Shown here: positions 37,409 through 61,699 of the stretch, in pieces
How positions within the stretch are numbered: position 1 is the first letter of the stretch
Layout of the letters: each line of letters starts with the position of its first letter
Assembly (NCBI GenBank): GCA_964057225.1
Contig: OZ059900.1
Location: forward strand, 26,350,001-26,414,000
Source: Auanema rhodensis
Lineage: Eukaryota; Animalia; Nematoda
Reading direction: 5' to 3'
Length of the DNA: 64,000 bases
Notes under the pieces: generated by a model
Told to the model about the DNA's origin: nothing
The model's input: the letters and a program-made list of their open reading frames with translations, nothing else
Databases searched by the model: none
Program-made: the position numbers and the translations under genes

Positions 37409-38850
37409 ATGGAAAATACAGGACGCTTCATAAATGGAGTTTCTCAAACTGCTCAATATGATTTTCTAGATCGGGCAGCGGACAAAGATGCTGAATATGT
37501 ATCACATTCTGTGAGTTTTAAAACATTTTTACGCATAGGTTTCTACAATTTCAGACTGAATTCAATGATACAATAGTTGGTAATGAACAATTTTTCGAAA
37601 CTTCAATTGAGGGAAATGTTGCAGAGGAATTAGAGGAAAACCCATCAAACCAAAAAGTAAGCATTGTGTTCAAGAAATTTAAAATGTAAAAATTTTGTTT
37701 TCAGATGAATGAAATCGCATTATATCACGAACAGAAAAATAAAAATATTTCAGAAAAACTTATGTTGCAAAATGAAGACAGTAGTTATAGGATTGATGAA
37801 ATGAAAATTGTTTGCAGAAATGCAATTACCAGCTTTTTCGCTGATAGAATTTCAGCAAATGGCGAATCGGCACCAACCCACTCAGGAATCAACAACTATA
37901 ATATTGTAAAAGTTGTAGAGGAAAAAGATTATTTGGAGAAACTAATCGAAAACGAACAATTTATGGATTTTGACAATTCGAACAATGTCGACTGGTTAAA
38001 CGCACCAATCAAAACAATTATTAAAGAGGTGAAACATTTAGGCTTGATATTTAAAACTTTTTCTGTAGATAAACGCCACGAAGGAACCGTCAAATTTCGA
38101 TGTGATGATAAGTGTTTTCTGTTTAATTCAGTTCACAACAACACTACAAATGAACAGGTTTGGAAAATGGTTAAAATTCTGTTTTTCAGAACAACAATGT
38201 GACCATGTTGTGAACGTCAATTCGTTCAAAATACGGGCAATTGAATGCGGTTTTCCCAAAAATTGCGATAATACAGTACATGTAAGTTATCACAATCTTT
38301 TCCTGAATGCTTATCCATTTTTCTATTTCCAGATAATTTTGCATTTTGAATCTATCACAAAAAGAAAAGTGATATCCTCGTTTTTCAATCATCTCTTGAA
38401 TGTGAACAAAAATGAAGAAGAAACAATGATCAAACTGACACCCATTCAGTGTCAAAGAGAACTTCAAAGAATGAGAAAATTAATGGCGGAAGATGTCATC
38501 AGCTATCAAGGTTTTTTAATTTCAAAAATATTACTGATTAACAAAAATATGAAACATTTTAGGAACTGTAATAAACAACATATCTCTTCATTATCTCTAT
38601 ATAATGGAAAACGAAATACAAAAAAACAGCTGGAAGTTGACGGTAAGTAATAAGTTTTTCGAGCAATATTATTTTTTTAGAACTGCATGGAATTGCGTTA
38701 CGATGTAGCTATGCGGCATCAATCACAATTAAAACACTTAATATCCCCTGTTGACGATGCTGAATGTGATAGAAAGGATGTACGAGTATATATACTCTAC
38801 GGAGATTCTGAAGCAGGCAAATCTTATTTTGCTGAGAAATATCTCGGTAT
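37409..38850 (+). pseudogene. Intron-containing CRESS-Rep-like SF3 helicase gene, paralog 1, truncated after Walker A
   Basis: About 7 exons from ATG 37409 to RVYILYGDSEAGKSYFA. The 3' exons present in the mirror copy are deleted here. Confidence 0.78.
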
Positions 38851-39579
38851 GAATTTTGAATTATGTTTCATCGCGGAAGAAATTCTTCCATCTGAAAATG
38901 TAGATTAAAAAAACTGTTGTGCAGCAGAACTTTGTGATTATTTCAAGAAAATTATTTGAAAACTAAAGAAAGCAGAATTTATAAATATTGGAGAAATTCT
39001 TCCATAATTTCCATGATTCTTGTTTCATCATATACTATATTCAGTTTTCCCGAAAAAGATAAAAAGAAAATTCTACCTATATAAAAAGGTAAATGATTTT
39101 TTTTTCTAATTTACTTTGACTATATATACACATGTTTATATGTGAGATTTGTTTTAACTAGTTCATGTATACAAACCCAATCTTTTTTCAAAGATGTCCT
39201 TTTTACATTTTTTCAACAAAGAAAAATGATTAGCTGTTTTTCATCAATATCAATTTTAAATTCATAGTTATTGCTTTACAAAAAAGTATATTTAGGTTTT
39301 TCTAAATAAAGGTGAAAATCAATTTCTTCGATCAACTTATTTTTGAAAACCTTTTGCTTCTGGCATAGTATTCAAAAAATACGGACATCATTGTCAGCCG
39401 ATAGCAAAATGTTAACTTACTAGCATCATAAATGCAATAAACTATCCAATCTTTTACCGCTTTGCCACCCTGGGCTATAAGAATTTGATAGTCAGAGTAT
39501 ATATAAATAGACATACATCTTTTTTTCTTGTATTTTTTTTAGTCTAACATTAATTACTTTGTTATTTGGATATTTTCCA

Positions 39580-40577
39580 GATTTAAATATCCGTAATCAT
39601 GTCAATGATCAGTACCAACATTGAAAAGAAAACTGCTACTACGTATAAACATACTCTACTTTGCGCGGAACAAATAAATACAGAACTTGATTCATTTGAG
39701 TTTCAGAATGAAAATTTGGATATTCTTCCAAATGGTCAGGTTTTTAAAAAATAATTTCTTTATGTTATCAAATTGTTTTCAGATTTACAAATTGTTGATA
39801 TTATCGAGTTTCAAGGATTGCGATGTTCAACACCTTTGAGCGAAAGAAAGTTACCAAGTGTCGATAAGTTCATCTTAAAAAGTACAAACGTGTAATGAAT
39901 AACAAATTTTTTTATCAAATTTTCAGAAGAACCATTAGACGTTTCTGATATTTTATGTAAGAAAGTTGAAGAAGGTTTGATCATTGTAAAAATGTCTGTA
40001 AAGATTTTTATTTTGCAGTTGTAGCTGTTTCTAATGAACCTCATAGGGCTCAAAATGACTGTTTCTTTACTGAAATAAAGAAAAAAAGAAGAAGTTCGGG
40101 AGATGTGATTATTGAGTGCAAATGTGAGATTGCACATCTCAAAAATAGGGCTATTTCAAAAATTGCTAGTGAGAATTTTAAACATATTCAAATCTCAATA
40201 AATTGTACTTTTCTAGAAAATATTCAACTGATTGACGAACGGCAATGCATTCCTGATTATTGCACAATCGGTTGCAAACCATTGGTATATCATAAAACTA
40301 CACGCTCCTGGCGCCCAGCCATTATTGAAGATATTTCCGATGTATATAGTAGCATAAAGTATTCGTTGATGACAGTAAATTCCACAATCTGAGTATTGTT
40401 ATTTTCAGAGCGATGACGTGCCAGATAAAATGATTGCAAAAAAATAACATTTTTTGCTCACAAAAACAAGACTTGTGGGAAAAAAAAAATTGGCCGAAAC
40501 ACATGTATAGATTAGTTTGCGATGATATTTCTGAGCCACATCTCTACTTGATTCAATCATTAAAAGATCTTGCTTGA
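39580..40577 (+). pseudogene. Spliced gene of unknown function with possible Tudor-like C-terminal barrel (mirror copy ~53346-54360 -)
   Basis: Several short introns. Segment GCKPLVYHKTTRSWRPAIIEDI...IKY resembles a Tudor strand pattern. Stops and indels are present. Confidence 0.45.
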
Positions 40578-41560
40578 ATATATGTAACCTTTTTCATATA
40601 TTCTCATTTTTATAATTTACTCGTTTTTACATTTTTCATGCCATCAATCCTCATTTTATGATCAAAAATAAAAAGTTTTACGATCGATTTGAGTATTTTT
40701 CTACATGTCAGAGCATATTGAAATTGTGTTCAATCATTAAAACAAGTTTAGTTCAGTCTTATGAAACGTTTTATATTTTATAAAAAAATCATATTTTAAC
40801 AATTGAATTGTTGTTCTTTGATATCTGTTAAAATGCTCAACCTTTGGCCTGTTTTGTTTTGTTACAACTAACAAATTTATTAAAAAAAATACCAGAACCC
40901 AATCAATTTTAGAAGTTCAATGAAATATAAAATAAAAAAATATAAAAATATTTTAAACATATCTTGAACTAATTCTATATGTAAAAAGCAGTTGTCTATT
41001 TGTTCAAATATTCTAAATTAGTGAAAGAACTTCTTCCATTCACAAGAAACTTAAATTGGTGTGAGAGTTTGTTTCATAATTTATTTTGCGGAAATCAAGA
41101 TATAGGTTTTTTTAAATATCAATTTACAATTCATTTTCTATGCGTTTATTTTCAGATAAACTAATTTAAATATTTTATTCAATTATATTATTCACTCTGA
41201 GGTTTAAATAATATTTGAAGTTCTTCCATCTGGGAATGTACACAGAAAATAAAACCTGTTATGAAGGAGAATTTCGTCAGAACAAGTAGTTGTATTTCAG
41301 CTATTTCAGAACAAGTATGTGTCTGATCTCAAAAAAGTAGGATCTACGAATTTTTTTTCTCTATATATTTTGTTTAATGTGTGGATATTCCATTCTTACT
41401 TGATTTTTATTGATTTGGCAATTTAATTTAACTACCTCATTTTTTCATGTGTCAGTGATATGAATTTTGCATATGTTGCTGAAAATTTAGGCAAACGCAG
41501 ACTTAATCCTTCAATAGGTATATTTTCGATTTTTCCAGAGTTCTCAAAATTATTTTTTAG

Positions 41561-41965
41561 GACTAGATATGTGGAGCGCGAACGGAACTGCAGCTGAAGG
41601 GCTCACGGAAGAAGAAAGAGATTTCATCGATGACTCATATGGTGAGTGGATTTATTCAATGTAAAACGTGAATCTAATATTCCTATCTTTCAGATTTAGA
41701 AAAAGAAAAAGTTGAAATGTTTTCTTTATTGAGCGGTGAGAAACACGGACAAGAAAAAAGAGCTGTAAGCAGAAGAATTGAATCGAGGAAAGATGTATTC
41801 ATCTTAGACAAACCACGCAGAATTCAAGTTAGTTTTCAATATATGTGTTCTAACTCGACAAATTTAATGCAATTTCTATTGATAGTTTTAAAAATTCCCG
41901 AAGAGCGTAATTATTTGCTCGAGCTTAAAAAAAACAGTTTGGAGAAAAAAAGAAAAACTCGCTAA
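41561..41965 (+). pseudogene. Spliced gene fragment, unknown function (mirror copy ~51956-52360 -)
   Basis: Exons GLTEEERDFIDDSY and DLEKEKVEMF...KPRRIQ with GTGAGT and TTTCAG sites. Confidence 0.4.
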
Positions 41966-42054
41966 TTAATGGTTTCTCTAGGTGTGCTAGAGAAATAACG
42001 GTACGTTTCAATATTTTTCCAATTTCCATGAGACATTACAGTTTTGTGCCAGTT

Positions 42055-43195
42055 CAAAGTTATCTATTTCATCTATGATAATTGCTTCTTGGTTTTTGTA
42101 TTCTGTAATTGAAACATTAATAATTGAAATATGTCATACTTATTCACTTTCGAAATGTGCCGAATTATCAGCTACTATGTGATACACACTATTACCTGGA
42201 AAATGAAACGTTAAGTGAAACAAAGTGTTAACCAAGAAAAAACCTAGAAACTTTGAAGCAAAATGTGTTTTTCCTGTTCCTACATCACCATATAGTACAT
42301 AAACGCGGACATTGGTTCTGTAAGCTTCCTTTGGTTCTTGGAAAGCACACAATTGTTTCAATTGTGTCTGATGTCGCATGGCAGCATCAAGTTTCAGTCC
42401 CATGCAGTCACGAAAACTCCAGCCATCATTTTCGATTTTTTTATCATTATGTCTAAATATCCGAGACTGAGTTCATTATCCTTGGTTCCTTAACGTTTCC
42501 AATAGGAAAACAACGAAAAAAAATTTTTTAACTATACCTCTGACACAGTAGCTATTATGGTTCATGGACTCTCTGAACTTCTTCAAATCCACAGCATTGA
42601 TTATTTTAGTAACTGTGATATTGAAAGAATTAGTCAGCTCATCATGCCGTAATAATTTAGTGAAGTACTGGATTACTTCAGTTTCAGTGGTGAGCGTATT
42701 GAAGTGTATTATCATCTGAAAAAATCCATAAAGAGTGAAACATATTGATAAAGTACTTACGCTTATATTATCATCACCGTCATCATCATTGGAAAATTCG
42801 ATACATTTCATGAATGCATTTTTTGAATCAATGGTCACATCAGTCATCCATTGCACAAATATATCAGTGATCACTTTGAGATAAAATGAAATGAATACAC
42901 AACAGCAAATGATTTTTCATCTTTAGTAGATTGTCTTATCTAAAAAAATTTTTTTTTTTTACAAACAGCAATATTACTTTTTTCATTTGATCCGAAATAG
43001 ATAGTGGCGCTGGAGTATTTGTATCATTTTCAATCGAACGCGTTGATTTAGAAACTTGTGTTAGTATTCTGTTCTATATTCAAAAATTATTAAATGAGAA
43101 AATTCAAGAACATACCCATTCCTGATAAATTATAGAGTTTTCTTCATCGAAGTTTTGAGATTGATTGGATACTGGTATTTCTTCTTCTACATCTT
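42055..43195 (-). pseudogene. CRESS-Rep-like SF3 helicase gene, paralog 2 (left copy)
   Basis: RVYVLYGDVGTGKTHFA ... YKNQEAIIIDE split by short introns. The 5' end is replaced by the 37-bp array. Confidence 0.78.
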
Positions 43196-43543
43196 CATGA
43201 GATCTATGACTAAGCATATGACTAAGTCTAAGCATGAGATCTATGACTAAGCATATGACTAAGTCTAAGCATGAGATCTATAACTAAGCATATGACTAAG
43301 TCTAAGCATGAGATCTATGACTAAGCATATGACTAAGTCTAAGCATGAGATCTATGACTAAGCATATGACTAAGTCTAAGCATGAGATCTATGACTAAGC
43401 ATATGACTAAGTCTAAGCATGAGATCTATGACTAAGCATATGACTAAGTCTAAGCATGAGATCTATGACTAAGCATATGACTAAGTCTAAGCATGAGATC
43501 TATGACTAAGCATATGACCAAGTCTAAGCATGAGATCTATGAC
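43196..43543 (-). repeat. 37-bp telomere-derived array (~9.4 units)
   Basis: Reverse complement of the repeat in 104-6282. Confidence 0.95.
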
Positions 43544-44820
43544 GAAATCAAAGGTGAAAGTTTCAACTCTCTCAAGTTTCTCCGAAAAAAACTCCGGTTC
43601 GGCCCCCAAGTCAAATAATAGCATCCTAGTGGGCATCCCTCTCTTTCAATAGCTGATGATGCTGTGTTGAAAAACCCAGAAATGCATAAATCTACACCTA
43701 TCAGCCTTTTAGTCAAGTCTTCATGCATTTTGGAGACTATCTTACTACCTCTCAGCATTTCTACGCCGTTGCTATATACTCTATTTAGGAAGGTGCTACT
43801 TCTCCAACTTATTAGCGTTTTAGTCTTGTCAATCAAGAAACCTAAGTCACCGTAAACTCTACATAGAAATTCAAAAAAGTGCTCGCTTTTGTTGAGAAGT
43901 GTTTGAACAGTTCCATTCCCTTTAGTGTGCAATTCCAAGGTGGCATCATCTATCATTACCTTAACCTTACAAATATCAAATCTGCTAATTATCTTTGCTC
44001 TTCTAGCACACCTAGATGTGTATGCACAAATGCACGAGTGAATAATAGTATCTAAAGAACCAAACCATCCTTGAATTCCACCATTGTCAAGGGTAGAAAT
44101 CATCCTTATGCCTCTCCTGTTAGTTACCATCATTATTCTTTTAAAGAAGTAACTTATCTCTTGAAATGGGGAATATTCAAAGAGACTAGTATGGACTTTT
44201 CATTGCACATAATTGGCCCCTTTACAATAGTATCTAATAGCTCATTATTTCTATACCTATGAATTGGATCAATTTCACCAGTAGCCTCCTCTATGTTACT
44301 ACTTATGCGCGTGACATCATGTGCGTCCAAGTATGCTGTGTCTGCATAATCTACCCATTTTAGGAGCCTCTTAAGGCTGCACTCACCTAAATCCTCATCT
44401 GGTATGGACACCTCTAAACCTTGCAGTAACCTCTTCATCCAAGTCTTTTTCTTAACTTTATCATAATTTTCAATATGAGACGTGATATCTCTATCATGAT
44501 ACCCCTTAGTCTTCAGATGCCTTACTACAGCAACCAGCAAATGACCCTTCATAAACTTAATGAACTCATCCCTTGTTTCTTGTCTGAAGGGATTTTGGGA
44601 ATTCATTTTGACATATGTATTTACGTGAAGATCTTGTATACTGCAATCAGCAGTAGGTAGTAGGTGGTATAAATAACTGATGCCTATCCTGTGCCTCTCG
44701 GGAAATCCTTGCAGTATACAATGCCATGGGGTGAAATTAGGCATAAGATCAAAAATCTCTTGCTCTAACACTCTTTTCTTGGACTCCGAACCAGTCTAAC
44801 AAGACATAGCAACCTTGTAC
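43544..44820 (-). pseudogene. Endogenous negative-strand RNA virus L (RdRp) fragment, qinvirus-like (left copy)
   Basis: Mirror of 49065-50341. Confidence 0.85.
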
Positions 44821-45940
44821 AAAAAAATGAACATCAATCAATGTTTATGAAAGGGTGTGTGGCGGGATTTGAAAAAAACGTTTTGTTTCACGTGGTGTAA
44901 TTGATTATTCGCGCGCTTTGGAACATTTTTAGCGCTAGTGCGTTTTTGCGATCCACCCTGTTAAACATAGTGGCCATACCAAGCCCTAAAAGGTTTTTCT
45001 CGAGCATAGTTGTATAATTTTTCAAATCATCAACTCTTATACGGTCAGTTGATTTATTATAAGGTAATGGGCCACCCGAATGCCAAAAATGAGTAATTAA
45101 AGGTAAATCGTTTTTGCGACAACCAACATACTGAACGAAACAAGACTCATTGAGAGAATGTAACTGGAGTTTCAAAAGCTCCGTTTCTTTTTCCCACACT
45201 TCCATTGAGTCAAAAAATTTATGATCGTTGTAGCGACATAAAGGACTCAGTAATACTATATGCGCTTGCAATACTACCCCCAAACGTGACAAAATTCTCA
45301 AAATTTCTTGAATTTCGGAAGTATTTGTAATCATTGGTAGTGTTACAAAAACATATTTCAAATTTACTTTGTTTAGTAAATATCGTGGAATATCTTCTTT
45401 CATTGAAGAATACTCAACTGAACGACCATAAGGAAATTCAAATTCTGTTAACCCGCTATAGTTTTTAGGGTAGAAGAAAATATCTTCTTTAACTCTCTTT
45501 TCTTCCCGAGAGATTTTTCCTAACGAAAAAAGAAATGCTTTTGAGGCGTTGTCTTCTGACATTCCAAAAAGGGCGCATTCTGTGAATGTTAGATGATAAT
45601 TCTCTAACAATAAATAATCTATTTTAGCGTGTAAACAATTTTTCCGTTGAATACAAAATGCTTCAGCCATGTTTATTGCTTGCGGCATGACTTGCATACG
45701 ATTAATAACATTGAGTTTTTGATCAATCCATATTTTTGGATTCTCTAAAACTTCGATAAACTGGGCCAGACGATATGTATTTGAAATTTGTAGTCCTTTG
45801 AGTGGTATCGGACATTTCTCTTCAAAAATGGAGCCATAAGTTGCTGTTTTCCAACTGCACTGTTCTTCATATCCGTTGTTTCTTTGTTATTTTCCCGAAC
45901 ATTTATACAAAGGGTAATCATAATGTTAAACATGATTTTT
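44821..45940 (-). mobile_element. Inverted copy of the 3' region of the LTR retrotransposon
   Basis: ORF 44888-45697 mirrors 48275-48997 and continues into sequence absent from the + copy. Inner boundary is approximate. Confidence 0.65.
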
Positions 45941-48900
45941 TACAGGTTGAACAAGTAACCGATAGAAAATTCATGAATCTGTCAATTACAAATAGTCAAA
46001 AAGGTTCGTTAGTAAATTCTAAACTGAATAAATCCTTTTCTTCTTTACAGCTGAAGAGCTCAGCAAGAAAGAACGAACTTTACAGCCAGGAGTGCAGTTA
46101 TCAGGGTGAGTCCTTTTACGATATTGCAAAACTCATGAAAACCCAGTTACTACCTGAAGTTGAGGCTTATAAGGGTGGATCGTATAGTGAATTCGTTGAT
46201 TTCACAGAACGATTTAACTATAAATACCCAGATGATGTTTTTTCTCAACGTGAGAAAAAACTTTTATTCATCAATAAACTCTAAGGCGAGATCAGAAACC
46301 GCTATAGAGAGTTACCTGAAGCCATAAAGCAAAGTTCCTTAGATGTCATAGTGAACAGTTTACGTATAGAGTCAACCGTTTCACAAAGGCAGGGAAGAAT
46401 GCAGGCTACTGAAAACTTGAGAAGTTTGAAATGGAATAGATCCCAGTCGTTAGTAAATTACTGCGATGAGTTAGAAAAACTAACTCAACTGGCTAATCCA
46501 GATTTATTTCCTGGTTTATTATCGTTCGAAAGAGCTAATAAACTGTCCCAAGAACTTTGTAACTGTTCTTGTGGAGTTTCCATTCTTGAAAAAATAGAGG
46601 ATGAGGAGGACGAAGAAATTTACGAAAAAGTAAAACAAATCGCCCTCAGATGTGAACGAAATGAGTTAACTCGTTCAATCAATCAATCCAATAAATCCGA
46701 GCAGAAACAAAACTTGAGCCGGAAACATTATCCTCATATTTTCGATGAGAGAACAGTGAGAAACACTAATAATAATGAAATTATTTGTGTAAACTGTAAT
46801 AGAAAAGGACATACTGCAAACGTATGTTTTAAAAGACAAAATGAGAGAATAGAGAATGAAAGTAGACTTAATACTCCTCGAGAACCACCCAGCATTAACA
46901 GAAAAGCTGAGAGTTGGAATCGGGCAATCCAAATCACTTCATGTGATTTGGGAAACCCCCCATTGTTTTGTAAACCAGCATTAGGGAGAATGACTTTATG
47001 TCAAGTTCATTAGCATGATGCATTAATAGATACTGGATCACAAATTTCAGTTATCAGTTCATCATTGCTAGTTCGAGTAATCGACGTGTTGAAACAAAGA
47101 AAAATCAACGCAGATGAAAGAATAGTAGAACTACCATGGACTAATAAAAAGTTCATAGTCAACGCATCAGGTGACCAAATGTATTTTGTTGGCGCCGTGC
47201 GAATGTCTGTTTTGTGTGATGAAAACCACAAAGAGGCAATTGTTGACTTTTTAGTCAGCAAAAACAAAGAAAATCAAATGATATTAGGTACAAATTGTTT
47301 GAATTCTTTAGACATATGCTTGAAGTTCAATAAAACTCAAGCAATGACTTTAAAAAGAGTGTATTTACCTCCTTTTTCGCAAAATCAAGTGTTAGTTTCT
47401 TGTCACGCGATCTCAATAAAAAGAGAAATGTTTTTTAACGCTCTTACTGCTGTTGCAGTTTCGGGAATATATCCCATCAAAGATAATGTATCAACCGTGA
47501 ATTAACATAATAACACGGACAACCCTGTGATAATTAAGGCAGGAGAATTTATAGGTCACTGGAGATCTGGTTTTGAAACAATAGAGCCAAATCCAGCGAT
47601 AAAAAAGATCAGTTTGAGAGAAAAACCTGAACACGAATGCGAAATACAGCATCAGGACTCTTACCGATTGGATAAACGAACTTTTGAGAGTCAAAAGTTT
47701 AAAGCTCCTAATTTGGGGTTAGTTAAAAACAATGTGCAGGTTGCTCTAAATGAAGCCGACCTAACACATACTGATATGGTCACAAAACCAATCAGACAGA
47801 AAGTTCTAATTGTTCCTATTAGAGTCAGGAACGGATTTAAGAAGGTTTTCAAAAATCTTCTAAACAAGAGAATGAATGAACCTAGCATTAATGCTATGGC
47901 TCTTCCTATTGTTTCAATAGAAAATAAAAATAGGAATGATGAAACCAAAAAAAGGTTTAAATCATACTATGAGAAAAAGAGTGAGAAAAAATCCGATTCA
48001 CCAAAAATAAGTGATCGAGTTTTCATTAAAACACCTTTTGAAAAAAGAGGTGATCCGAATAAGAAACAAGCTTTCGAATTTCGATGACGGCACAAAGTGA
48101 TAACAAAGCATAACACTTTTGCATTTATTAATGAACTAGAGGAAAATAATGAACCTCTAAAAGTTCAAACAGATCTACTACATAAAATCCCTGATAAAGT
48201 GGGAGTAGTAACTGCTGAAACAAAACGTAACAGGGAAAAAATGTGTTTGTTTACACGCTAAAATATATTATCTATTGTTAGAGAATTATCATCTAACATT
48301 CACAGAATGCGCCCTTTTTGGAATGTCAGAAGACAACGCCTCAAAAGCATTTCTTTTATCGTTAGGAAAAATCTCTCGGGAAGAAAAGAGAGTTAAAGAA
48401 GATATTTTCTTCTACCCTAAAAACTATAGCGGGTTAACAGAATTTGAATTTCCTTATGGTCGTTCAGTTGAGTATTCTTCAATGAAAGAAGATATTCCAC
48501 GATATTTACTAAACAAAGTAAATTTGAAATATGTTTTTGTAACACTACCAATGATTACAAATACTTCCGAAATTCAAGAAATTTTGAGAATTTTGTCACG
48601 TTTGGGGGTAGTATTGCAAGCGCATATAGTATTACTGAGTCCTTTATGTCGCTACGACGATCATAAATTTTTTGACTCAATGGAAGTGTGGGAAAAAGAA
48701 ACGGAGCTTTTGAAACTCCAGTTACATTCTCTCAATGAGTCTTGTTTCGTTCAGTATGTTGGTTGTCGCAAAAACGATTTACCTTTAATTACTCATTTTT
48801 GGCATTCGGGTGGCCCATTACCTTATAATAAATCAACTGACCGTATAAGAGTTGATGATTTGAAAAATTATACAACTATGCTCGAGAAAAACCTTTTAGG

Positions 48901-49064
48901 GCTTGGTATGGCCACTATGTTTAACAGGGTGGATCGCAAAAACGCACTAGCGCTAAAAATGTTCCAAAGCGCGCAAATAATCAATTACACCACGTGAAAC
49001 AAAACGTTTTTTTCAAATCCCGCCACACACTCTTTCATAAACATTGATTGATGTTCATTTTTTT
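45940..49064 (+). mobile_element. Gypsy/Ty3 (Cer-like) LTR retrotransposon, internally deleted and decayed
   Basis: Gag with zinc knuckle CVNCNRKGHTANVC, protease ALIDTGSQIS, the start of RT (KPIRQK...EPS...LPIV) fused near 47930 to the integrase C-terminus (FKSYYEK...DRVFI...KKQAFEF), then a 3' accessory ORF. Many stops. Confidence 0.85.
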
Positions 49065-50341
49065 GTACAAGGTTGCTATGTCTTGTTAGACTGGTTCGGA
49101 GTCCAAGAAAAGAGTGTTAGAGCAAGAGATTTTTGATCTTATGCCTAATTTCACCCCATGGCATTGTATACTGCAAGGATTTCCCGAGAGGCACAGGATA
49201 GGCATCAGTTATTTATACCACCTACTACCTACTGCTGATTGCAGTATACGAGATCTTCACGTAAATACATATGTCAAAATGAATTCCCAAAATCCCTTCA
49301 GACAAGAAACAAGGGATGAGTTCATTAAGTTTATGGAGGGTCATTTGCTGGTTGCTGTAGTAAGGCATCTGAAGACTAAGGGGTATCATGATAGAGATAT
49401 CACGTCTCATATTGAAAATTATGATAAAGTTAAGAAAAAGACTTGGATGAAGAGGTTACTGCAAGGTTTAGAGGTGTCCATACCAGATGAGGATTTAGGT
49501 GAGTGCAGCCTTAAGAGGCTCCTAAAATGGGTAGATTATGCAGACACAGCATACTTGGACGCACATGATGTCACGCGCATAAGTAGTAACATAGAGGAGG
49601 CTACTGGTGAAATAGATCCAATTCATAGGTATAGAAATAATGAGCTATTAGATACTATTGTAAAGGGGCCAATTATGTGCAATGAAAAGTCCATACTAGT
49701 CTCTTTGAATATTCCCCATTTCAAGAGATAAGTTACTTCTTTAAAAGAATAATGATGGTAACTAACAGGAGAGGCATAAGGATGATTTCTACCCTTGACA
49801 ATGGTGGAATTCAAGGATGGTTTGGTTCTTTAGATACTATTATTCACTCGTGCATTTGTGCATACACATCTAGGTGTGCTAGAAGAGCAAAGATAATTAG
49901 CAGATTTGATATTTGTAAGGTTAAGGTAATGATAGATGATGCCACCTTGGAATTGCACACTAAAGGGAATGGAACTGTTCAAACACTTCTCAACAAAAGC
50001 GAGCACTTTTTTGAATTTCTATGTAGAGTTTACGGTGACTTAGGTTTCTTGATTGACAAGACTAAAACGCTAATAAGTTGGAGAAGTAGCACCTTCCTAA
50101 ATAGAGTATATAGCAACGGCGTAGAAATGCTGAGAGATAGTAAGATAGTCTCCAAAATGCATGAAGACTTGACTAAAAGGCTGATAGGTGTAGATTTATG
50201 CATTTCTGGGTTTTTCAACACAGCATCATCAGCTATTGAAAGAGAGGGATGCCCACTAGGATGCTATTATTTGACTTGGGGGCCGAACCGGAGTTTTTTT
50301 CGGAGAAACTTGAGAGAGTTGAAACTTTCACCTTTGATTTC
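49065..50341 (+). pseudogene. Endogenous negative-strand RNA virus L (RdRp) fragment, qinvirus-like (right copy)
   Basis: Intronless. Motif B-like GGIQGWFGSLDTIIH, motif C VMIDDA, motif D/E YGDLGFLIDKTKT...FLNRVY.NG. The N-terminal part is in another frame and motif A is not seen. Confidence 0.85.
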
Positions 50342-50726
50342 GTCATAGATCTCATGCTTAGACTTGGTCATATGCTTAGTCATAGATCTCATGCTTAGAC
50401 TTAGTCATATGCTTAGTCATAGATCTCATGCTTAGACTTAGTCATATGCTTAGTCATAGATCTCATGCTTAGACTTAGTCATATGCTTAGTCATAGATCT
50501 CATGCTTAGACTTAGTCATATGCTCAGTCATAGATCTCATGCTTAGACTTAGTCATATGCTTAGTCATAGATCTCATGCTTAGACTTAGTCATATGCTTA
50601 GTTATAGATCTCATGCTTAGACTTAGTCATATGCTTAGTCATAGATCTCATGCTTAGACTTAGTCATATGCTTAGTCATAGATCTCATGCTTAGACTTAG
50701 TCATATGCTTAGTCATAGATCTCATG
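50342..50726 (+). repeat. 37-bp telomere-derived array (~10.4 units)
   Basis: Same unit as 104-6282, one unit longer than the mirror array. Confidence 0.95.
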
Positions 50727-51866
50727 AAGATGTAGAAGAAGAAATACCAGTATCCAATCAATCTCAAAACTTCGATGAAGAAAACTCTATAATTTATCAG
50801 GAATGGGTATGTTCTTGAATTTTCTCATTTAATAATTTTTGAATATAGAACAGAATACTAACACAAGTTTCCAAATCAACGCGTTCGATTGAAAATGATA
50901 CAAATACTCCAGCGCCACTATCTATTTCGGATCAAATGAAAAAAGTAATATTGCTGTTTGTAAAAAAAAAAATTTTTTTAGATAAGACAATCTACTAAAG
51001 ATGAAAAATCATTTGCTGTTGTGTATTCATTTCATTTTATCTCAAAGTGATCACTGATATATTTGTGCAATGGATGACTGATGTGACCATTGATTCAAAA
51101 AATGCATTCATGAAATGTATCGAATTTTCCAATGATGATGACGGTGATGATAATATAAGCGTAAGTACTTTATCAATATGTTTCACTCTTTATGGATTTT
51201 TTCAGATGATAATACACTTCAATACGCTCACCACTGAAACTGAAGTAATCCAGTACTTCACTAAATTATTACGGCATGATGAGCTGACTAATTCTTTCAA
51301 TATCACAGTTACTAAAATAATCAATGCTGTGGATTTGAAGAAGTTCAGAGAGTCCATGAACCATAATAGCTACTGTGTCAGAGGTATAGTTAAAAAATTT
51401 TTTTTCGTTATTTTTCTATTGGAAACGTTAAGGAACCAAGGATAATGAACTCAGTCTCGGATATTTAGACATAATGATAAAAAAATCGAAAATGATGGCT
51501 GGAGTTTTCGTGACTGCATGGGACTGAAACTTGATGCTGCCATGCGACATCAGACACAATTGAAACAATTGTGTGCTTTCCAAGAACCAAAGGAAGCTTA
51601 CAGAACCAATGTCCGCGTTTATGTACTATATGGTGATGTAGGAACAGGAAAAACACATTTTGCTTCAAAGTTTCTAGGTTTTTTCTTGGTTAACACTTTG
51701 TTTCACTTAACGTTTCATTTTCCAGGTAATAGTGTGTATCACATAGTAGCTGATAATTCGGCACATTTGGAAAGTGAATAAGTATGACATATTTCAATTA
51801 TTAATGTTTCAATTACAGAATACAAAAACCAAGAAGCAATTATCATAGATGAAATAGATAACTTTG
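50727..51866 (+). pseudogene. CRESS-Rep-like SF3 helicase gene, paralog 2 (right copy)
   Basis: Walker A GDVGTGKT and Walker B IIIDE. Frameshifts are present and the gene breaks off after Walker B. Confidence 0.78.
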
Positions 51867-54800
51867 AACTGGCACAAAACTGTAATGTCTCATGGAAATT
51901 GGAAAAATATTGAAACGTACCGTTATTTCTCTAGCACACCTAGAGAAACCATTAATTAGCGAGTTTTTCTTTTTTTCTCCAAACTGTTTTTTTTAAGCTC
52001 GAGCAAATAATTACGCTCTTTGGGAATTTTTAAAACTATCAATAGAAATTGCATTAAATTTGTCGAGTTAGAACACATATATTGAAAACTAACTTGAATT
52101 CTGCGTGGTTTGTCTAAGATGAATACATCTTTCCTCGATTCAATTCTTCTGCTTACAGCTCTTTTTTCTTGTCCGTGTTTCTCACCGCTCAATAAAGAAA
52201 ACATTTCAACTTTTTCTTTTTTTAAATCTGAAAGATAGGAATATTAGATTCACGTTTTACATTGAATAAATCCACTCACCATATGAGTCATCGATGAAAT
52301 CTCTTTCTTCTTCCGTGAGCCCTTTAGCTGCGGTTCCGTTCGCGCTCCACATATCTAGTCCTAAAAAATAATTTTGAGAACTCTGGAAAAATCGAAAATA
52401 TACCTATTGAAGGACTAAGTCTGCGTTTGCCTAAATTTTCAGCAACATATGCAAAATTCATATCACTGACACATGAAAAAAATGAGGTAGTTAAATTAAA
52501 TTGCCAAATCAATAAAAATCAAGTAAGAATAGAATATCCACACATTAAACAAATAATATAGAGAAAAAAATTTCGTAGATCCTACTTTTTTGAGATCAGA
52601 CACATACTTGTTCTGAAATAGCTGAAATACAACTACTTGTTCTGACGAAATTCTCCTTCATAACAGGTTTTATTTTCTGTGTACATTCCCAGATGGAAGA
52701 ACTTCAAATATTATTTAAACCTCAGAGTGAATAATATAATTGAATAAAATATTTAAATTAGTTTATCTGAAAATAAACGCATAGGAAATGAATTGTAAAT
52801 TGATATTTAAAAAAACCTATATCTTGATTTCCGCAAAAAAAATTATGAAACAAACTCTCACACCAATTTAAGTTTCTTGTGAATGGAAGAAGTTCTTTCA
52901 CTAATTTAGAATATTTGAACAAATAGACAACTGCTTTTTACATATAGAATTAGTTCAAAATATGTTTAAAATATTTTTTTTATTTTTTTATTTTATATTT
53001 CATTGAACTTCTAAAATTGATTGGGTTCTGGTATTTTTTTTAATAAATTTGTTAGTTGTAACAAAACAAAACAGGCCAAAGGTTGAGCATTTTAACAGAT
53101 ATCAAAGAACAACAATTCAATTGTTAAAATATGATTTTTTTATAAAATATAAACCGTTTCATAAGACTGAACTAAACTTGTTTTAATGATTGAACACAAT
53201 TTCAATATGCTCTGATATGTAGAAAAATACTCAAATCGATCGTAAAACTTTTTTTTTTTAATCATAAAATGAGGATTGATGGCATGAAAAATGTAAAAAC
53301 GAGTAAATTATAAAAATGAGAATATATGAAAAAGGTTACATATATTCAAGCAAGATCTTTTAATGATTGAATCAAGTAGAGATGTGGCTCAGAAATATCA
53401 TCGCAAACTAATCTATACATGTGTTTCGGCCAATTTTTTTCTTTTCCCACAAGTCTTGTTTTTGTGAGCAAAAAATTATATTTTTTTGCAATCATTTTAT
53501 CTGGCACGTCATCGCTCTGAAAATAACAATACTCAGATTGTGGAATACAAAAATATGAACTTACTGTCATCAACGAATACTTTATGCTACTATATACATC
53601 GGAAATATCTTCAATAATGGCTGGGCGCCAGGAGCGTGTAATTTTATGATATACCAATATTTTGCAACCGATTGTGCAATAATCAGGAATGCATTGCCGT
53701 TCGTTAATCAGTTGAATATTTTCTAGAAAAGTACAATTTATTGAGATTTGAATATGTTTAAAATTCTCACTAGCAATTTTTGAAATAGCCCTATTTTTGA
53801 GATGTGCAATCTCACATTTGCACTCAATAATCACATCTCCCGAACTTCTTCTTTTTTTCTTTATTTCAGTAAAGAAACAGTCATTTTGAGCCCTATGAGG
53901 TTCATTAGAAACAGCTACAACTGCAAAATAAAAATCTTTACAGACATTTTTACAATGATCAAACCTTCTTCAACTTTCTTACATAAAATATCAGAAACGT
54001 CTAATGGTTCTTCTGAAAATTTGATAAAAAAATTTGTTATTCTTTACACGTTTGTACCTTTTAAGATGAACTTATCGACACTTGGTAACTTTCTTTCGCT
54101 CAAAGGTGTTGAACATCGCAATCCTTGAAACTCGATAATATCAACAATTTGTAAATCTGAAAACAATTTGATAACATGAAGAAATTATTTTTTAAAAACC
54201 TGACCATTTGGAAGAATATCCAAATTTTCATTCTGAAACTCAAATGAATCAAGTTCTGTATTTATTTGTTCCGCGCAAAGTAGAGTATGTTTATACGTAG
54301 TAGCAGTTTTCTTTTCAATGTTGGTACTGATCATTGACATGATTACGGATATTTAAATCTGGAAAATATCCAAATAACAAAGTAATTAATGTTAGACTAA
54401 AAAAAATACAAGAAAAAAAGATGTATGTCTATTTATATATACTCTGACTATCAAATTCTTATAGCCCAGGGTGGCAAAGCGGTAAAAGATTGGATAGTTT
54501 ATTGCATTTATGATGCTAGTAAGTTAACATTTTGCTATCGGCTGACAATGATGTCAGTATTTTTTGAATACTATGCCAGAAGCAAAAGGTTTTCAAAAAT
54601 AAGTTGATCGAAGAAATTGATTTTCACCTTTATTTAGAAAAACCTGATGAAAAACAGCTAATCATTTTTCTTTGTTGAAAAAATGTAAAAAGGACATCTT
54701 TGAAAAAAGATTGGGTTTGTATACATGAACTAGTTAAAACAAATCTCACATATAAACATGTGTATATATAGTCAAAGTAAATTAGAAAACAAATCATTTA

Positions 54801-55784
54801 CCTTTTTTATAGGTAGAATTTTCTTTTTATCTTTTTCGGGAAAACTGAATATAGTATATGATGAAACAAGAATCATGGAAATTATGGAAAAATTTCTCCA
54901 ATATTTATAAATTCTGCTTTCTTTAGTTTTCAAATAATTTTCTTGAAATAATCACAAAGTTCTGCTGCACAACAGTTTTTTTAATCTACATTTTCAGATG
55001 GAAGAATTTCTTCCGCGATGAAACATGAAATATGGCCGTGATAATCAACGTCAGATCTCAGGTGTCTTCTCTCCAATTTGATATATTCAATTATTTATAA
55101 AGTATTTATTTTCAATCAATTGTCTTAACTGCCAAAAAAAAATTATGTGATATATTCAATGGTTTATACATAACCGTGGAAAAATTTTTTCCATTGTATT
55201 TATCTTCAAGTAATTGTTTTAACTTCCAAAAAAAAGTTTGAGATTGAATTAATTGTTCATACATAACGGTGGAAGAATTTCCTCCATAGTATTCATTTTT
55301 AATTAATTGTTATTGCTCTAGAAAAAATTAGGTAATTTATTTAATTGTTCATATATATCATTGTTTGTTTACCTATATCGTGATGAGAACAAAAAATAAT
55401 TATGGAAGAAACTTTCACGTTTTTTTTGTAAATGGAAGAAATTCGTCTACTTTTGATACAACCAAACAATTTTTCATCTAAATTAGTTCAAAATATATTT
55501 TTTTTTATAAATTCAATTATTTTCATGCTAGGTGTGTACAGCTCGAAAGCGAATATGAAAAAAATTTATTCTACAAATTTGCGAGAAAAATTTGAACCTG
55601 AATGATAATATTGAGATCATTTTTATGAAAAGAATGAAATGTTAATAACTGATCATTGTAAGAAAAAAAATAAAATAATTCTAATCTCAGTTTAATTCCA
55701 CAAAAGGGACATCTATTATATAATTAGGATTAATTTTCAACACTGTTTCAAATGCTTTTCCTCTCCTCCATTTCGGTTGAGATT

Positions 55785-58247
55785 TCAATTCGGTTTGCCA
55801 ATCCAATGTATTCGTCTCATGAACGCTGTCAACTGAAACCAAATGTAATTTTTAACCTTTTCGGGAACTCACTGTTATATGATCATTCACAAACCATTGC
55901 GAAGGTTCTATGTTCAAAATAAGAAAGATATGATGGGCTTTTATGACACAAATTAAAAATTTAACGTTCAATCTGAAAAAATGGGTTTAGTAATACTATT
56001 TTTGTGTTCAACACTTACCTGCAGGTACCATCATTACACATCATTAAGAGCTGTTTTCCTGTCATGTACCCACGTTGTCCGAACTGTTCAACTTCATCAA
56101 TTATAATTCCATTTTGCTTGTTATATTCTATAAATTATTTTTTTTATCGGAACAAAGTTGAAACTCACTTTCAAAATAACTAGTACAATCAGCAGATGTT
56201 GTATACACAGATCCGGCAACTTTTTCTGAAATAGTTCTTTCAAATTTGAAAATTAATTTAAAAAATACCGAGATACTTCTTAGCAAAATAAGATTTGCCT
56301 GCTCCAGAATCTCCGTAGAGTATATATACTCGTACATCCTTTCTATCACATTCAGCATCGTCAACAAGGGATATTAAGTGTTTTAATTGTGATTGATGCC
56401 GCATAGCTACATCATAACGCAATTCCATGCAGTTCTAAAAAAAATAATATTGCTCGAAAAACTTATTACTTACCGTCAACTTCCAGCTGTTTTTTTGTAT
56501 TTCGTTTTCCATTATATAGAGATAATGAAGAGATATGTCGTTTATTACAGTTCCTAAAATGTTTCATATTTTTGTTAATCAGTAATATTTTTGAAATTAA
56601 AAAACCTTGATAGCTGATGATATCTTCCGCCATTAATTTTCTCATTCTTTGAAGTTCTCTTTGACACTGAATGGGTGTCAGTTTGAGCATTGTTTTTTCT
56701 TCATTTTTGTTCACATTCACGAGATGATTGAAAAATGAAAAAAAAATGACGGCAACTTTTTCTGAAATAGTTCTTTCAAATTTGAAAATTAATTAAAAAA
56801 AATCATACCGAGATACTTCTTAGCAAAATAAGATTTGCCTGCTCCAGAATCTCCGTAGAGTATATATACTCGTACATCCTTTCTATCACATTCAGCATCG
56901 TCAACAAGGGATATTAAGTGTTTTAATTGTGATTGATGCCGCATAGCTACATCATAACGCAATTCCATGCAGTTCTAAAAAAAATAATATTGCTCGAAAA
57001 ACTTATTACTTACCGTCAACTTCCAGCTGTTTTTTTGTATTTCGTTTTCCATTATATAGAGATAATGAAGAGATATGTCGTTTATTACAGTTCCTAAAAT
57101 GTTTCATATTTTTGTTAATCAGTAATATTTTTGAAATTAAAAAACCTTGATAGCTGATGATATCTTCCGCCATTAATTTTCTCATTCTTTGAAGTTCTCT
57201 TTGACACTGAATGGGTGTCAGTTTGAGCATTGTTTTTTCTTCATTTTTGTTCACATTCACGAGATGATTGAAAAATGAGGATATCACTTTTCTTTTTGTG
57301 ATAGATTCAAAATGCAAAATTATCTGGAAATAGAAAAATGGATAAGCATTCAGGAAAAGATTGTGATAACTTACATGTACTGTATTATCGCAATTTTTGG
57401 GAGAACCGCATTCAATTGCCCGTATTTTGAACGAATTGACGTTCACAACATGGTCACATTGTTGTTCTGAAAAACAGAATTTTAACCATTTTCCAAACCT
57501 GTTCATTTGTAGTGTTGTTGTGAACTGAATTAAACAGAAAACACTTATCATCACATCGAAATTTGACGGTTCCTTCGTGGCGTTTATCTACAGAAAAAGT
57601 TTTAAATATCAAGCCTAAATGTTTCACCTCTTTAATAATTGTTTTGATTGGTGCGTTTAACCAGTCGACATTGTTCGAATTGTCAAAATCCATAAATTGT
57701 TCGTTTTCGATTAGTTTCCCCGAATAATCTTCTTTTTCTACAACTTCTACAATATTATAGTTGTTGATTCCTGAGTGGGTTGGTGCCGATTCGCCATTTG
57801 CTGAAATTCTATCAGAGAAAAAGCTGGTAATTGCATTTCTGCAAACAATTTTCATTTCATCAATCCTATAACTACTGTCTTGATTTTGCAACATAAGTTT
57901 TTCTGAAATATTTTTATTTTTCTGTTCGTGATATAATGCGATTTCATTCATCTGAAAACAAAATTTTTACATTTTAAATTTTTTGAACACAATGCTTACT
58001 TTTTGGTTTGATGGGTTTTCCTCTAATTTCTCTGCAACATTTTCCTCAATTGAAGTTTCGAAAAATTGTTCAGTACCAACTATTGTATCATTGAATTCAG
58101 TCTGAAATTGTAGAAACCTATGCGTAAAAATGTTTTAAAACTCACAGAATGTGATACATATTCAGCATCTTTGTCCGCTGCCCGATCTAGAAAATCATAT
58201 TGAGCAGCTTGAGAAACTCCATTTATGAAGCGTCCTGTATTTTCCAT
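55785..58247 (-). pseudogene. CRESS-Rep-like SF3 helicase gene, paralog 1, most complete copy, with a 540-bp internal tandem duplication
   Basis: YGDSGAGKS, YNKQNGIIIDE, QLLMMCNDG.CR/LNVK, IFLILN...QWF and Arg finger AFMRRI, spread over about 11 exons. Confidence 0.82.
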
Positions 58248-60423
58248 GTTGTGGAAAAAATGAGAACAATGTGGTTTGTTTTAATTTTTTTTTCTTTGGC
58301 TTTGGAATTTTCTCTTTTATACCATTTATTGAACTGTCTGTTAAGATAATGATTTATGGAAAATTGTAAATAGATTGTAAAATTGTCAAGTTTATTAATT
58401 CATAATGCATGTACGCAAACGCTTCAGAAGAATCAATTGCACCCCAAGTGTATCATGCATTTGTTTCTGACACATGTCTCATTTTAGTATGAGAGTATTT
58501 GATGTATGCCGCCACAACTCTGCTTATAGCAATCTTTTTTGTTTTCGAGAATATTTTCTGTTTGTAAATTTTGTTGATTAAAGATGAAAACAACTGGATA
58601 TTTATATTTGCCGATAAGTGACATGATATTCATTTATTATTATTGCGTTTAGCATAATCAAAAAAAGATTGAAAAATTTTGAGTTGTTCAAACTCTCTTA
58701 CTGTTCATATAAGAATTTTGTTATTTGAAAAACTTTGTTTTATCATTTTATCACGTGTTGTTAAGATGACAATGTATTCTGTTTTGTTCAACTCTTATTT
58801 GGTATCCGTAACTTAAAATCTGTGAGTTAATTTGTATTGTTCAGTTTCAGCTTTTGACAGATTTTGTTACCGCTGCCAGATGATGTCTGCTGTTTGTCCT
58901 ACTTTGAGAGTATTTGAAAACATGGAAGATCGATATGTGGGTTCTGTTCAAATTATATTCAGAAATTTTTTTTCAAAATTAGGCATTAACACAGAAAAAT
59001 AGCTTCGACAGAATAAGCAAGTTATTGCAATGGAATGATGGAGACAATTTGTCTATTGTTCCTTGTAGCTCTATACTTTTAAAATACGGCAGTATACATA
59101 AAGAAGTTCTTCAAAACTTTAAAGAACTACCTGATATTTTGATGAAAATGTACATAGTGAAGGTGAGAAAAAAATTTAATTCAGAACTTAATTCTACTAT
59201 TCATTCTGGAATCATTTGCAGAAAGACATTGTTTGTAACCCATTTCTCTCCAATGAAGAAAAAATCAATCTTCTCACATTTTATGAAACGTTGAAAAAAC
59301 TTCCAATTGATATAAGAGAAATTTTATTGTTGTGGGTGAGTGTATCTCAAACGATTGAAAAATAATTGAAATTTTTACAGATTGTTTTGGAAACTATATG
59401 CGATTGTCCTTGTTTTAAAAAAAACAACAACATAATATTTGCTTTCTTAGAAGACGAGCTGTTCCTTTCAGAAACCATAGATAAAACGGTATAAACTAAC
59501 TTAAGTCATAAAGACAGGTTTATATTTATTCCAGAATAAGCTAAATGACCTCATTCTGCTTTTTTTGCAGCAATTGGTCGTAAGAATGTCTGAACAGAAG
59601 GTAAACATTTTTTCAAAAAATCTTATTGATGAAAACAAGACATCTTGTGTATGTGGATTACAATGGACGAAATTTGAAGACAGTTTCGCTAAATGGAAAC
59701 CAGCAAGTCAACAAGAATTCAATAATTTGAGGTCGAACTAACTTTTTTCTTTGATAATTTTTTGCTTTTCAGAAATGGAAGATTAGTTTATGCTTGTGTC
59801 AAAACAAGATATAAATTTATGAGATGGAAAAAAGTTTTTATTCATAGTAAAAATCGAAATAAGTCGTTCTATAAAGTGACAACCGAAAGGCATGGAATTC
59901 CAAGCAGAGACTGTATTCCTCTATGCGAATCTTGTTTGATTTATAGAATTCATTCAGAGACCAACCTGCGGTTTGAATTTTTTGTGAAAAAGGAAGAATA
60001 TCCAAATTTTCATTCTGAAACTCAAATGAATCAAGTTCTGTATTTATTTGTTCCGCGCAAAGTAGAGTATGTTTATACGTAGTAGCAGTTTTCTTTTCAA
60101 TGTTGGTACTAATCATTGACATGATTACGGATATTTAAATCTGGAAAATATCCAAATAACAAAGTAATTAATGTTAGACTAGAAAAAATACAAGAAAAAA
60201 AGATGTATGTCTATTTATATATACTCTGACTATCAAATTCTTATGGCCCAGGGTGGCAAAGCGGTAAAAGATTGGATAAGGCATGGAATTCCAAGCAGAG
60301 ACTGTATTCCTCTATGCGAATCTTGTTTGATTTATAGAATTCATTCAGAGACCAACCTGCGGTTTGAATTTTTTGTGAAAAAGGAAGAATATCCAAATTT
60401 TCATTCTGAAACTCAAATGCATT

Positions 60424-61204
60424 TTTTTCACAAAAAATTCAAACCGCAGGTTGGTCTCTGAATGAATGTATGCAATTAAACTATCAGATTGCTACAAAAC
60501 ATATAAAAGAGTTCACAAAAATGATGAACGAAGCAATAAACCCGTCGAGTGATCGAGAAAAGGTTAGAGTCTATGTATTAATTGGACCTTCGAGGACTGG
60601 AAAGAGCTACTTCGCGAAGAAATTTCTAGGAACTGAAAACACATACTTCTGCTCTGCTGATTGCACTAACTACTTCCAAGGTTTGCCAGATGTTATTTCA
60701 TATTGAGCACAAAATTCAGATTATAAAAGTCAAAGGAATATAATAATCGATGAATGTGACCAGTTTGGAAAAAAAGGATACATGTCTGGCAAACAACTAT
60801 TATTGCTCTGCAATGACGGACCTTGTCGACTCAATGTGAAATTTAGCAGTGTTCAGATCATAGCTACAAAAATATTCTTGATTTCTAACAGACCTATCGA
60901 CGAATGGTTTCCGAATAATACCATAACAGTTAAGCTAAATTACGAAACAGTTGTATTTTATTAATTGTTTTACTAACAGGAGGAAGCTTTTACAAATCCT
61001 ATACACTGGATGGGAAAAGCCACACGACAAAGAGAACAACCACATTGGAGCCATGGAGCAGCGATGGCCGAGGTATTGCGCTATAATGAGCAGGATATTG
61101 AAGAAGAGCCTCACGTTTTTTTTAATGTAACATACTCATGGAAAAAATATGTTCTTAGTTTAATGTTTCTGTTTGTCAATAAAAAAAATCTTGTCTGTTT
61201 CTAA
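60424..61204 (+). pseudogene. CRESS-Rep-like SF3 helicase gene, paralog 3 (3' half only)
   Basis: RVYVLIGPSRTGKS...YFQ/DYKSQRNIIIDE...LLLLCNDGPCRLNVK...IFLISNRPIDEWF with two short introns. The 5' part is replaced by a rearranged mosaic. Confidence 0.85.
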
Positions 61205-61699
61205 ATTTATGACATAGAAAAAATTTAAAATCTTGTCTGCTCCTAAATTTATGAGATGGAAAAAAGTTTTTATTCATAGTAAAAATCGAAATAAGTCGTT
61301 CTATAAAACCGAAAGTGACAACCGAAAGGCATGGAATTCCAAGCAGAGACTGTATTTCTCTAGTTGTGTAGTCTAGTTTTATTTTTCAGTTTAAATAGTT
61401 CACCGGTAAAATGTGTACCTTCCTAAGACTTGTTTGATGTACATTTCACCTGTGAAATGTGACTACGAATGAGAATCAGGTGGTTGTTTTTTTTTAAATC
61501 AAAATAAGGTAGTTGTTTTTTTAAAATCAAAATAAGGTAGTTGTTCTTTAAAGTTTAACTAATGAAATAAAGTGTTAAATAACAACATAAGTCTATTCAC
61601 ACTCATGAATAATAAACCTCAGTTTTAACAGTTGACCGGTAAAATGTGTACCTTTTTGATACTTGTTCGATGCACGTTTCACCGGTAAAATGTGCACAT

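Follow-up and report, generated by a model that had tools for sequence, protein, structure and literature searches.

The replication-associated protein (Rep) of circular Rep-encoding single-stranded (CRESS) DNA viruses of the circovirus type (PDB 7lar/7las and 8xms) combines an HUH nuclease domain (Viral_Rep, PF02407) with a superfamily 3 (SF3) helicase (RNA_helicase, PF00910), in which Walker A, Walker B and motif C follow in that order. Endogenous Rep sequences of single-stranded DNA viruses are usually single, intron-less and degraded open reading frames (ORFs). A Rep-type module is also paired with a helicase in a gene of a eukaryotic chromosomal element, the Helitron RepHel, in which an HUH nuclease is joined to a superfamily-1 (Pif1-like) helicase. 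In filarial nematodes, endogenous circovirus-like Rep sequences have been recorded, some of them expressed (PMC3198968), and in a Rep phylogeny three of four nematode sequences clustered, which suggested a nematode-infecting CRESS lineage (PMC6186406). Rep-bearing transposon-like repeats of fungi and lower animals have been described as well, with terminal inverted repeats, transposase ORFs and short distances between copies (PMC3198968). Here, we describe an intron-rich gene family with a Rep-like helicase core in a 64,000-nt stretch of the genome of the nematode Auanema rhodensis (GenBank assembly GCA_964057225.1, contig OZ059900.1, positions 26,350,001 to 26,414,000 of the forward strand; hereafter the window, in whose own numbering all coordinates are given). 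Our reading, which we hold with a probability of roughly 0.7, is that these copies are a pseudogenised, lineage-specific, multi-exon nematode gene family whose SF3 core was derived from the Rep of a CRESS virus or a related replicon.

Copies of the family were located by stop-to-stop translation and by regular-expression and tblastn scans, and exon models were drawn up from three-frame reading. As a preliminary description of this DNA had counted, the five copies represent three paralogs. Two of these, P1 and P2, are each present twice, because 35198–45638 and 48247–59529 are the arms of a palindrome (the right-arm copies are termed P1′ and P2′), and P3 is single. No further copy was found within the window when every exon piece was used as a tblastn query. 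Exons of different paralogs matched one another at E 1e-8 to 1e-18 (tblastn), with 39–55% identity in the Walker A exon. The latter occurs six times: in P1 (38681–38848, + strand), twice in P1′ (− strand), in P2 (42242–42409, −), in P2′ (51512–51679, +) and in P3 (60464–60679, +). The Walker B stretch (IIIDE) was found in P1′, P2, P2′ and P3, the LL..CND...LNVK stretch together with motif C was restricted to P1′ and P3, and AFMRRI was restricted to P1′.

Protein searches, selection figures and alignments were all made exon by exon. The diagnostic exon was that of P3 in which Walker B (IIIDE), LL..CND..LNVK and motif C follow one another (query 60707–60961). In PDB this exon had just two matches, 8xms, named “Replication-associated protein” (E 0.031), and 7lar, named “ATP-dependent helicase Rep” (E 0.044), and both chains were also listed for the Walker A exon, among generic P-loop proteins. 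An alignment of the diagnostic exon with the two corresponding P1′ exon pieces as separate rows, designated A1, was then used as a HMMER profile against 1.84 billion representative proteins, three of which were found at E≤0.001. The sole full-span match was P0002, a 298-aa protein on whose residues 197–257 the profile positions 1–65 fell (E 3.1e-4). P0002 comes from Logan assemblies (longest contig, 1080 nt) and contains the Pfam domains Viral_Rep (3.4e-18) and RNA_helicase (3.4e-10). The other two were multi-stretch matches to proteins of unrelated Pfam families, one of which covered just 14 profile positions. Alignment of A1 to P0002 by hhalign gave a probability of 97.4 and an E of 1.4e-11, with 42% identity over 62 columns. 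Single exon pieces were also compared with P0002 by Smith–Waterman alignment, with 300 shuffles each. The Walker A exons aligned to residues 142–175 (z 3.0–3.7), the P2 Walker B stretch to 197–209 (z 3.6), the P1′ motif C exon to 229–257 (z 6.5) and the P3 diagnostic exon to 197–257 (z 26.8, far beyond chance), and the exon matches were colinear overall. The PDB, profile, hhalign and colinear exon matches indicate that the helicase core is homologous to the CRESS-type Rep SF3 helicase and, as judged from sequence, the ATPase core clearly appears to descend from a helicase of this type. Both the Rep-like motifs read in the preliminary description and the derivation that it proposed were therefore borne out, the latter by the Rep helicases in PDB and by P0002 with its Viral_Rep and RNA_helicase domains.

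Several results weigh against this reading. Exon-by-exon Pfam searches of ten segments gave no match to Viral_Rep or RNA_helicase, even at E≤1, and returned just sub-threshold generic P-loop families. A three-row profile made from the diagnostic exon was without a match in PDB, though the single exon had given both Rep chains, and at the database level significance depends on a single protein (E 3e-4). With P0002, the N-terminal domain described below aligned at noise level by both hhalign and Smith–Waterman, and the tail exon, which carries AFMRRI in P1′, showed no similarity to P0002. Neither a word search nor the profile search of 1.84 billion proteins returned an annotated nematode relative, and therefore nothing shows conservation of the family across species. 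Furthermore, a past host function is read from dN/dS on short exons only, and purifying selection would act equally on a gene carried by a selfish element. When the diagnostic exon was the query, the word search, which covered proteins of 47–149 aa, gave no match. A profile or fold search had been expected, in the preliminary description, to lead to RNA_helicase or Rep. The diagnostic exon did lead to Rep, but PF00910 stayed silent exon by exon and Foldseek of a weak model of the N-terminal domain found nothing at E≤0.001.

The absence of a Pfam viral family over threshold is also what would be seen if the family encoded a cellular P-loop NTPase and resembled Rep by chance. The Walker A exon points the same way, since on its own it matches only P-loop families and chains of the generic kind, and a profile of this exon found only generic P-loop proteins in PDB. 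Sub-threshold generic P-loop matches are, however, what is expected of this exon alone, because it comprises only about 55 residues. The exon from Walker B to motif C, by contrast, matched Rep helicases only in PDB, had no cellular family among its matches and was matched no better by any cellular P-loop family or transposon helicase. The sole full-span match among the 1.84 billion proteins bears Viral_Rep, and its pairwise z reached 26.8. We consider a chance resemblance hardly credible.

The family resembles CRESS Rep in that Walker A is followed by Walker B and then by motif C, and in its identity to P0002, the bearer of both Pfam domains. It differs from CRESS Rep in that an HUH nuclease, an origin stem-loop and a recognised capsid neighbour were not detected. 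It also differs in having eight to ten host-type introns and an acidic extension at the N-terminus, and in being chromosomal and decayed. The family recalls the Helitron RepHel, in which a chromosomal element of eukaryotes encodes a Rep-type module together with a helicase, but the helicase here is of the SF3 CRESS Rep type and the nuclease was undetected. No Helitron or Pif1 family was found among the Pfam, PDB or large profile-search matches.

The preliminary description had noted that the N-terminal region lacks clear HUH motifs and is preceded by an acidic extension, and both observations stood. Acidic N-terminal exons were seen in P1 and P2, and Pfam, hhalign, Smith–Waterman and PDB profile searches all failed to match the N-terminal region to a nuclease. 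Following these exons is a domain, hereafter the N-domain, which is common to P1 and P2 (22–23% identity, blastp E 1.5e-7, stop-free segments), and in which two residues can be read directly, a His conserved in I(L/I)HF and, close to the exon end, a Tyr. Pfam searches of the N-domain segments gave no match, including to the HUH nuclease PF02407, and the N-domain profile matched only a designed protein in PDB. AlphaFold models of the N-domain were made by reading through its intron, which is in frame and stop-free in P1 and P2. These models were weak, with a predicted local distance difference test score (pLDDT) of 56.6 and a predicted template modelling score (pTM) of 0.50 for P2, and a pLDDT of 39.7 for P1. 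When the P2 model was compared with PDB by Foldseek, nothing was found at E≤0.001. The list for this weak model (pLDDT 56.6) consisted mostly of ferredoxin-like folds and contained HUH nuclease domains of Vientovirus Rep, pMV158 RepB and SIRV1 ORF119, at template modelling (TM) scores of 0.32–0.50. The modelled fold list is compatible with a degenerate nuclease fold and proves nothing. The original N-terminal nuclease domain would have either diverged past recognition or been replaced. At the other end of the protein, past motif C, where an arginine finger would lie in a Rep, the tail has RR within AFMRRI in P1′ and other residues in P3, where the RR is substituted, and the tail does not align to P0002.

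The introns suggest that these sequences have a history as spliced genes in a nematode-type genome, in agreement with the short nematode introns at shared positions noted in the preliminary description. All of the introns checked by script (10/10) had GT..AG ends, lengths of 39–51 nt and an A+T content of 65–84%, and their acceptors were mostly of the nematode type, (T)TTCAG. Four more P1 introns (38–52 nt) were placed by junction strings only. Four intron positions were common to paralogs. These are a phase 0 intron directly before IILHF in P1 and MIIHF in P2; a phase 1 intron after YL in P1′ and FL in P2, at a place where P3 has no intron; a phase 1 intron after YFE in P1′, HFE in P2 and YFQ in P3; and a phase 0 intron after HIT in P1′ and TIT in P3. 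P1′ also has a private intron between CR and LNVK. The intron past the second N-domain exon occupies the same or nearly the same place in P1 as in P2, the P2 junction being ambiguous. For P1, an intron of 32 nt behind the third exon was rejected because the phases do not fit; a tentative candidate junction about 100 nt further upstream, between this exon and the first N-domain exon, keeps the frame.

These shared positions bear on whether the paralogs could be three independent integrations of different CRESS-like viruses, with no history as a host gene family. Such an origin would suit the strong divergence of the paralogs (39–55% identity in the Walker A exon), and several Rep integrations per genome have been reported elsewhere (PMC3198968). 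However, separate viral insertions would not share host-type introns, and here both position and phase are common to paralogs at four sites; in addition, a non-Rep-like N-domain is common to P1 and P2. Independent integration is therefore very improbable. A recent viral insertion or a contamination was rejected on the basis of the introns, the divergence of the paralogs and the surrounding host repeats. The virus-derived sequence is embedded in chromosomal DNA, having host-type introns and flanks that consist of satellites, (TTAGGC)n blocks and other repeats.

Like the nematode CRESS-like endogenous sequences on record (PMC3198968, PMC6186406), the family is Rep-derived, fixed in a nematode-type genome, multicopy and mostly degraded. 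It differs from them in its many introns at shared positions and in its non-Rep-like N-terminal half. In the main text of PMC3198968, a full-text search for the term “intron” gave no occurrence. Judged by the absence of these and of all other annotated nematode proteins from the matches of two protein searches, the family appears not to be close to the recorded nematode Rep sequences. Endogenous Rep in nematodes is thus already known; unusual here are the paralogous, gene-like organisation with many exons and an N-terminal half unlike Rep.

All five copies are damaged, as the preliminary description had stated, by truncations, a deletion, a duplication and a frameshift. P1, in the left arm (37409–38870, +), retains the acidic N-terminal exons, the N-domain exons 38132–38281 and 38333–38509, a short exon and the Walker A exon, all of which are stop-free, and a single deletion relative to the right arm has removed every exon past Walker A. 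P1′ in the right arm (55690–58247, −) is the fullest copy and comprises the P1-type N-terminal exons, Walker A, a small exon ending in YFE, the Walker B exon (56021–56125), the motif C exon (55873–55971) and the tail with AFMRRI (all −). It is broken by one internal tandem duplication of about 0.5 kb, which doubles the Walker A exon, and by one frameshift. P2 in the left arm (42053–43199, −) consists of acidic exons that abut a 37-bp satellite, the N-domain exons 42761–42871 and 42539–42715, the Walker A exon, a small exon ending in HFE and the Walker B stretch. P2′ (50723–51869, +) is its right-arm mirror, identical in all of the exon pieces tested, and both share one 3′ truncation past Walker B, and in both the 37-bp satellite cuts the 5′ end. 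P3 (60464–61204, +) is the helicase half only, with the Walker A exon, an exon containing Walker B and motif C (60722–60928) and a tail exon from 60980. It has no internal stop or frameshift, but a single 5′ truncation against a repeat has taken away the whole N-terminal half.

The substitutions tell of old constraint followed by decay. Between paralogs, dS in the helicase exons was saturated (undefined or 1.5–2.2), whereas dN was 0.26–0.67 per exon, which indicates that the paralogs are old and were once constrained. Where dS was defined, dN/dS was approximately 0.24 (P1′ and P2, Walker A exon) and 0.37 (P1′ and P3, motif C exon). Between the left- and right-arm copies of P1, in contrast, 24 of 366 codons were changed, with 20 nonsynonymous and 4 synonymous differences, and this is what neutral drift gives. 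The dN/dS comparison called for in the preliminary description therefore showed constraint for the period between the paralogs, but not for the present arm copies. As no copy has escaped truncation or other breakage, and the P1 arm copies differ mainly by nonsynonymous changes, the copies in the window are pseudogenes.

Self-comparison of the window, which is AT-rich (GC about 0.27–0.39), resolved the palindrome into arms of 10–11 kb, the left one (35198–45638) holding P1 and P2 in convergent orientation and the right one (48247–59529) holding P2′ and P1′, around a centre of unique sequence (45639–48246). Identity between the arms is graded, being 100% over the inner 2443 nt and 97.8–99.5% over the remainder, as would be expected if the arms had undergone gene conversion with each other close to the centre. 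In length the right arm exceeds the left by about 1.7 kb, and a local tandem duplication is confined to it. Full identity of the inner 2443 nt would also be found if the doubling of P1 and P2 were a fold-back assembly artefact, in which case the true content would be three single genes, and large palindromes are a known form of mis-assembly. An artefact would, however, give identical arms, and these arms differ by about 2% elsewhere, by about 1.7 kb in length and by a duplication in one arm only. We therefore argue against an artefact, which we consider decidedly improbable. The preliminary description had proposed, as one of two options, a domesticated and amplified helicase. Five copies do exist, but the five-fold number is largely due to this one palindrome.

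A 173-bp satellite flanks the palindrome on the left (27961–35193, 41.8 copies) and on the right (61705–63998), the right array being inverted relative to the left and approximately 86–92% complementary to it. P3 lies in a unique stretch (59530–61700) between the right arm and the right array. It had been proposed that this satellite and the neighbouring orphan genes may belong to the same unit as the family. Neither proposal was supported: the satellite simply lies, in opposite orientation, at either end of the palindrome as a whole, and the orphan genes belong to no recognisable families. A 37-bp satellite forms a block between P2 and the orphan ORFs (43196–43543; mirror, 50342–50726) and is the same as that at 80–6283. 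In 49–6283 this satellite is interspersed with exact (TTAGGC)3–4 blocks (22 matches; chance expectation, none), which fall within 49–6199. TTAGGC is the canonical telomere unit of nematodes, and the region resembles subtelomeric or interstitial telomere repeats.

This setting is relevant to the alternative that the family was the replication or helicase gene of a DNA mobile element, intron-bearing and so far undescribed, so that the copies would be dead insertions and past selection would have acted on the element. All of the copies lie in repeat-rich DNA beside Maverick/Polinton sequence, an ORF with a zinc-knuckle pattern and satellites, P3 is bracketed by direct copies of another repeat, and our searches gave no related annotated nematode protein. 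Rep-bearing transposon-like repeats are, moreover, known in other eukaryotes (PMC3198968), and the family resembles them in that Rep-derived genes have been multiplied within a eukaryotic genome. Unlike those repeats, the family has no termini or transposase that we could find and its paralogs are saturated at silent sites, which does not fit a young burst. The palindrome and one local duplication account for all of the near-identical copies. In the self-comparison, no terminal repeats, either inverted or direct, were seen to bound a P1 or P2 unit. A nonanucleotide stem-loop origin was not found in the window, where 16 nonanucleotide-like sites occur and none of them has a flanking stem of ≥6 bp. 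Nuclease and transposase domains were undetected in the family and in the neighbouring ORFs, and family searches of these ORFs recognised no capsid, transposase or nuclease, although such capsids are hard to detect by sequence.

The repeats beside P3 are of a different kind and separately dispersed. The flanking repeat (59812–59942, +) has a direct copy at 61244–61384 (89%). Between it and P3, inside a partly duplicated 391-bp unit, is a 287-bp repeat (59992–60278) that recurs in inverted orientation at 39443–39729 and in direct orientation at 54210–54496. The surroundings of P3 thus look like rearrangement among dispersed repeats and not like the ends of an element. Over 59887–60467, the partial tandem duplication of the 391-bp unit is followed by a 44-bp inverted self-copy, and this hairpin-capable sequence lies directly at the 5′ edge of P3. 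Present neutral decay suits neither an active mobile element nor an active domesticated gene. Taken together, we regard a mobile-element gene as unlikely, and favour a history in which the family was once domesticated or at least led a long life as ordinary spliced genes.

Three consecutive orphan ORFs of 269, 205 and 198 aa lie in the left arm (43537–45697, −), with a mirror in the right arm (48275–50348, +), and had no relatives in Pfam, PDB or the word search. The last of them shows, by eye only, a polymerase-palm-like order of motifs, for which there was no tool support and which we do not claim, and its frame runs into the satellite. The centre of the palindrome contains ORFs on the + strand. 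In one of them (46351–47013), which had no Pfam match, a zinc-knuckle pattern like that of retroelement Gag proteins, CX2CX4HX4C, was read directly. Another ORF in the right arm (53346–53834, −; 162 aa; left mirror, 40105–40392, +, 95 aa) had no significant Pfam family, and by eye is a candidate for a small domain of the chromatin-reader type.

Outside the palindrome, one or more Maverick/Polinton-type virus-like elements occupy 6323–27888. Two protein-primed family B polymerases (PF03175, E 6.6e-21 and 5.2e-16) lie at 8508–12444 and 15771–19513, each interrupted several times, and an AT-rich tandem array (14790–15528; periods of 153–167 and 320 nt) is located between the two polymerase-bearing segments. 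An ORF at 21937–22392 resembles an adenovirus-type protease (PF00770, E 0.0015, under the Pfam gathering score). A 444-aa ORF (20099–21433, −) had its closest relatives among Logan/ENA proteins (49–73% identity), with a distant moth protein at 27%, and an exact look-up gave no recorded protein. Blocks resembling terminal repeats are found at 6323–7101 and 12480–13286, and an inverted one at 27126–27888. When the exon pieces of the family were compared with the rest of the window by tblastn, including the Maverick sequence, only chance-level matches were found outside 36480–61129 (E 0.012–0.37). The possibility that the helicase is a Maverick packaging ATPase was rejected, since it has no similarity to the Maverick genes and its best matches are Rep.

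From the observed helicase homology, introns with their shared positions, palindrome, contrast in selection and breaks, we infer how events followed one another, a former function and, as given above, what became of the nuclease domain. A Rep gene would have entered the germline and gained spliceosomal introns of the host type, and DNA-level duplication of the intron-bearing gene would then have produced three or more paralogs. The sharing of intron positions would be due to this duplication having followed the gain of introns. Subsequently, the paralogs would have diverged to synonymous saturation while their helicase exons remained under purifying selection, and such selection suggests a role at the protein level as an NTP-driven SF3 motor. 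In the window, the family is no longer maintained and its copy number is passive, P1 and P2 being doubled by one palindrome in satellite-rich, transposon-rich DNA.

If this reading is true, the locus records that a viral replication helicase was for a long time an ordinary spliced gene, or else the gene of a selfish element, in a nematode. It bears on the co-option of viral motor proteins, and also on the existence of a nematode-associated CRESS virus lineage, as suggested previously (PMC6186406). Since the copies in the window are dead, its value lies in pointing to where intact members might be sought. A further reading, which we consider rather unlikely, is that such members exist elsewhere in the lineage, either as domesticated viral motor proteins maintained by selection in the host, with many introns and a new or diverged N-domain, or as the core gene of a new class of intron-bearing Rep-helicase element; the copies described here would be their dead relatives.

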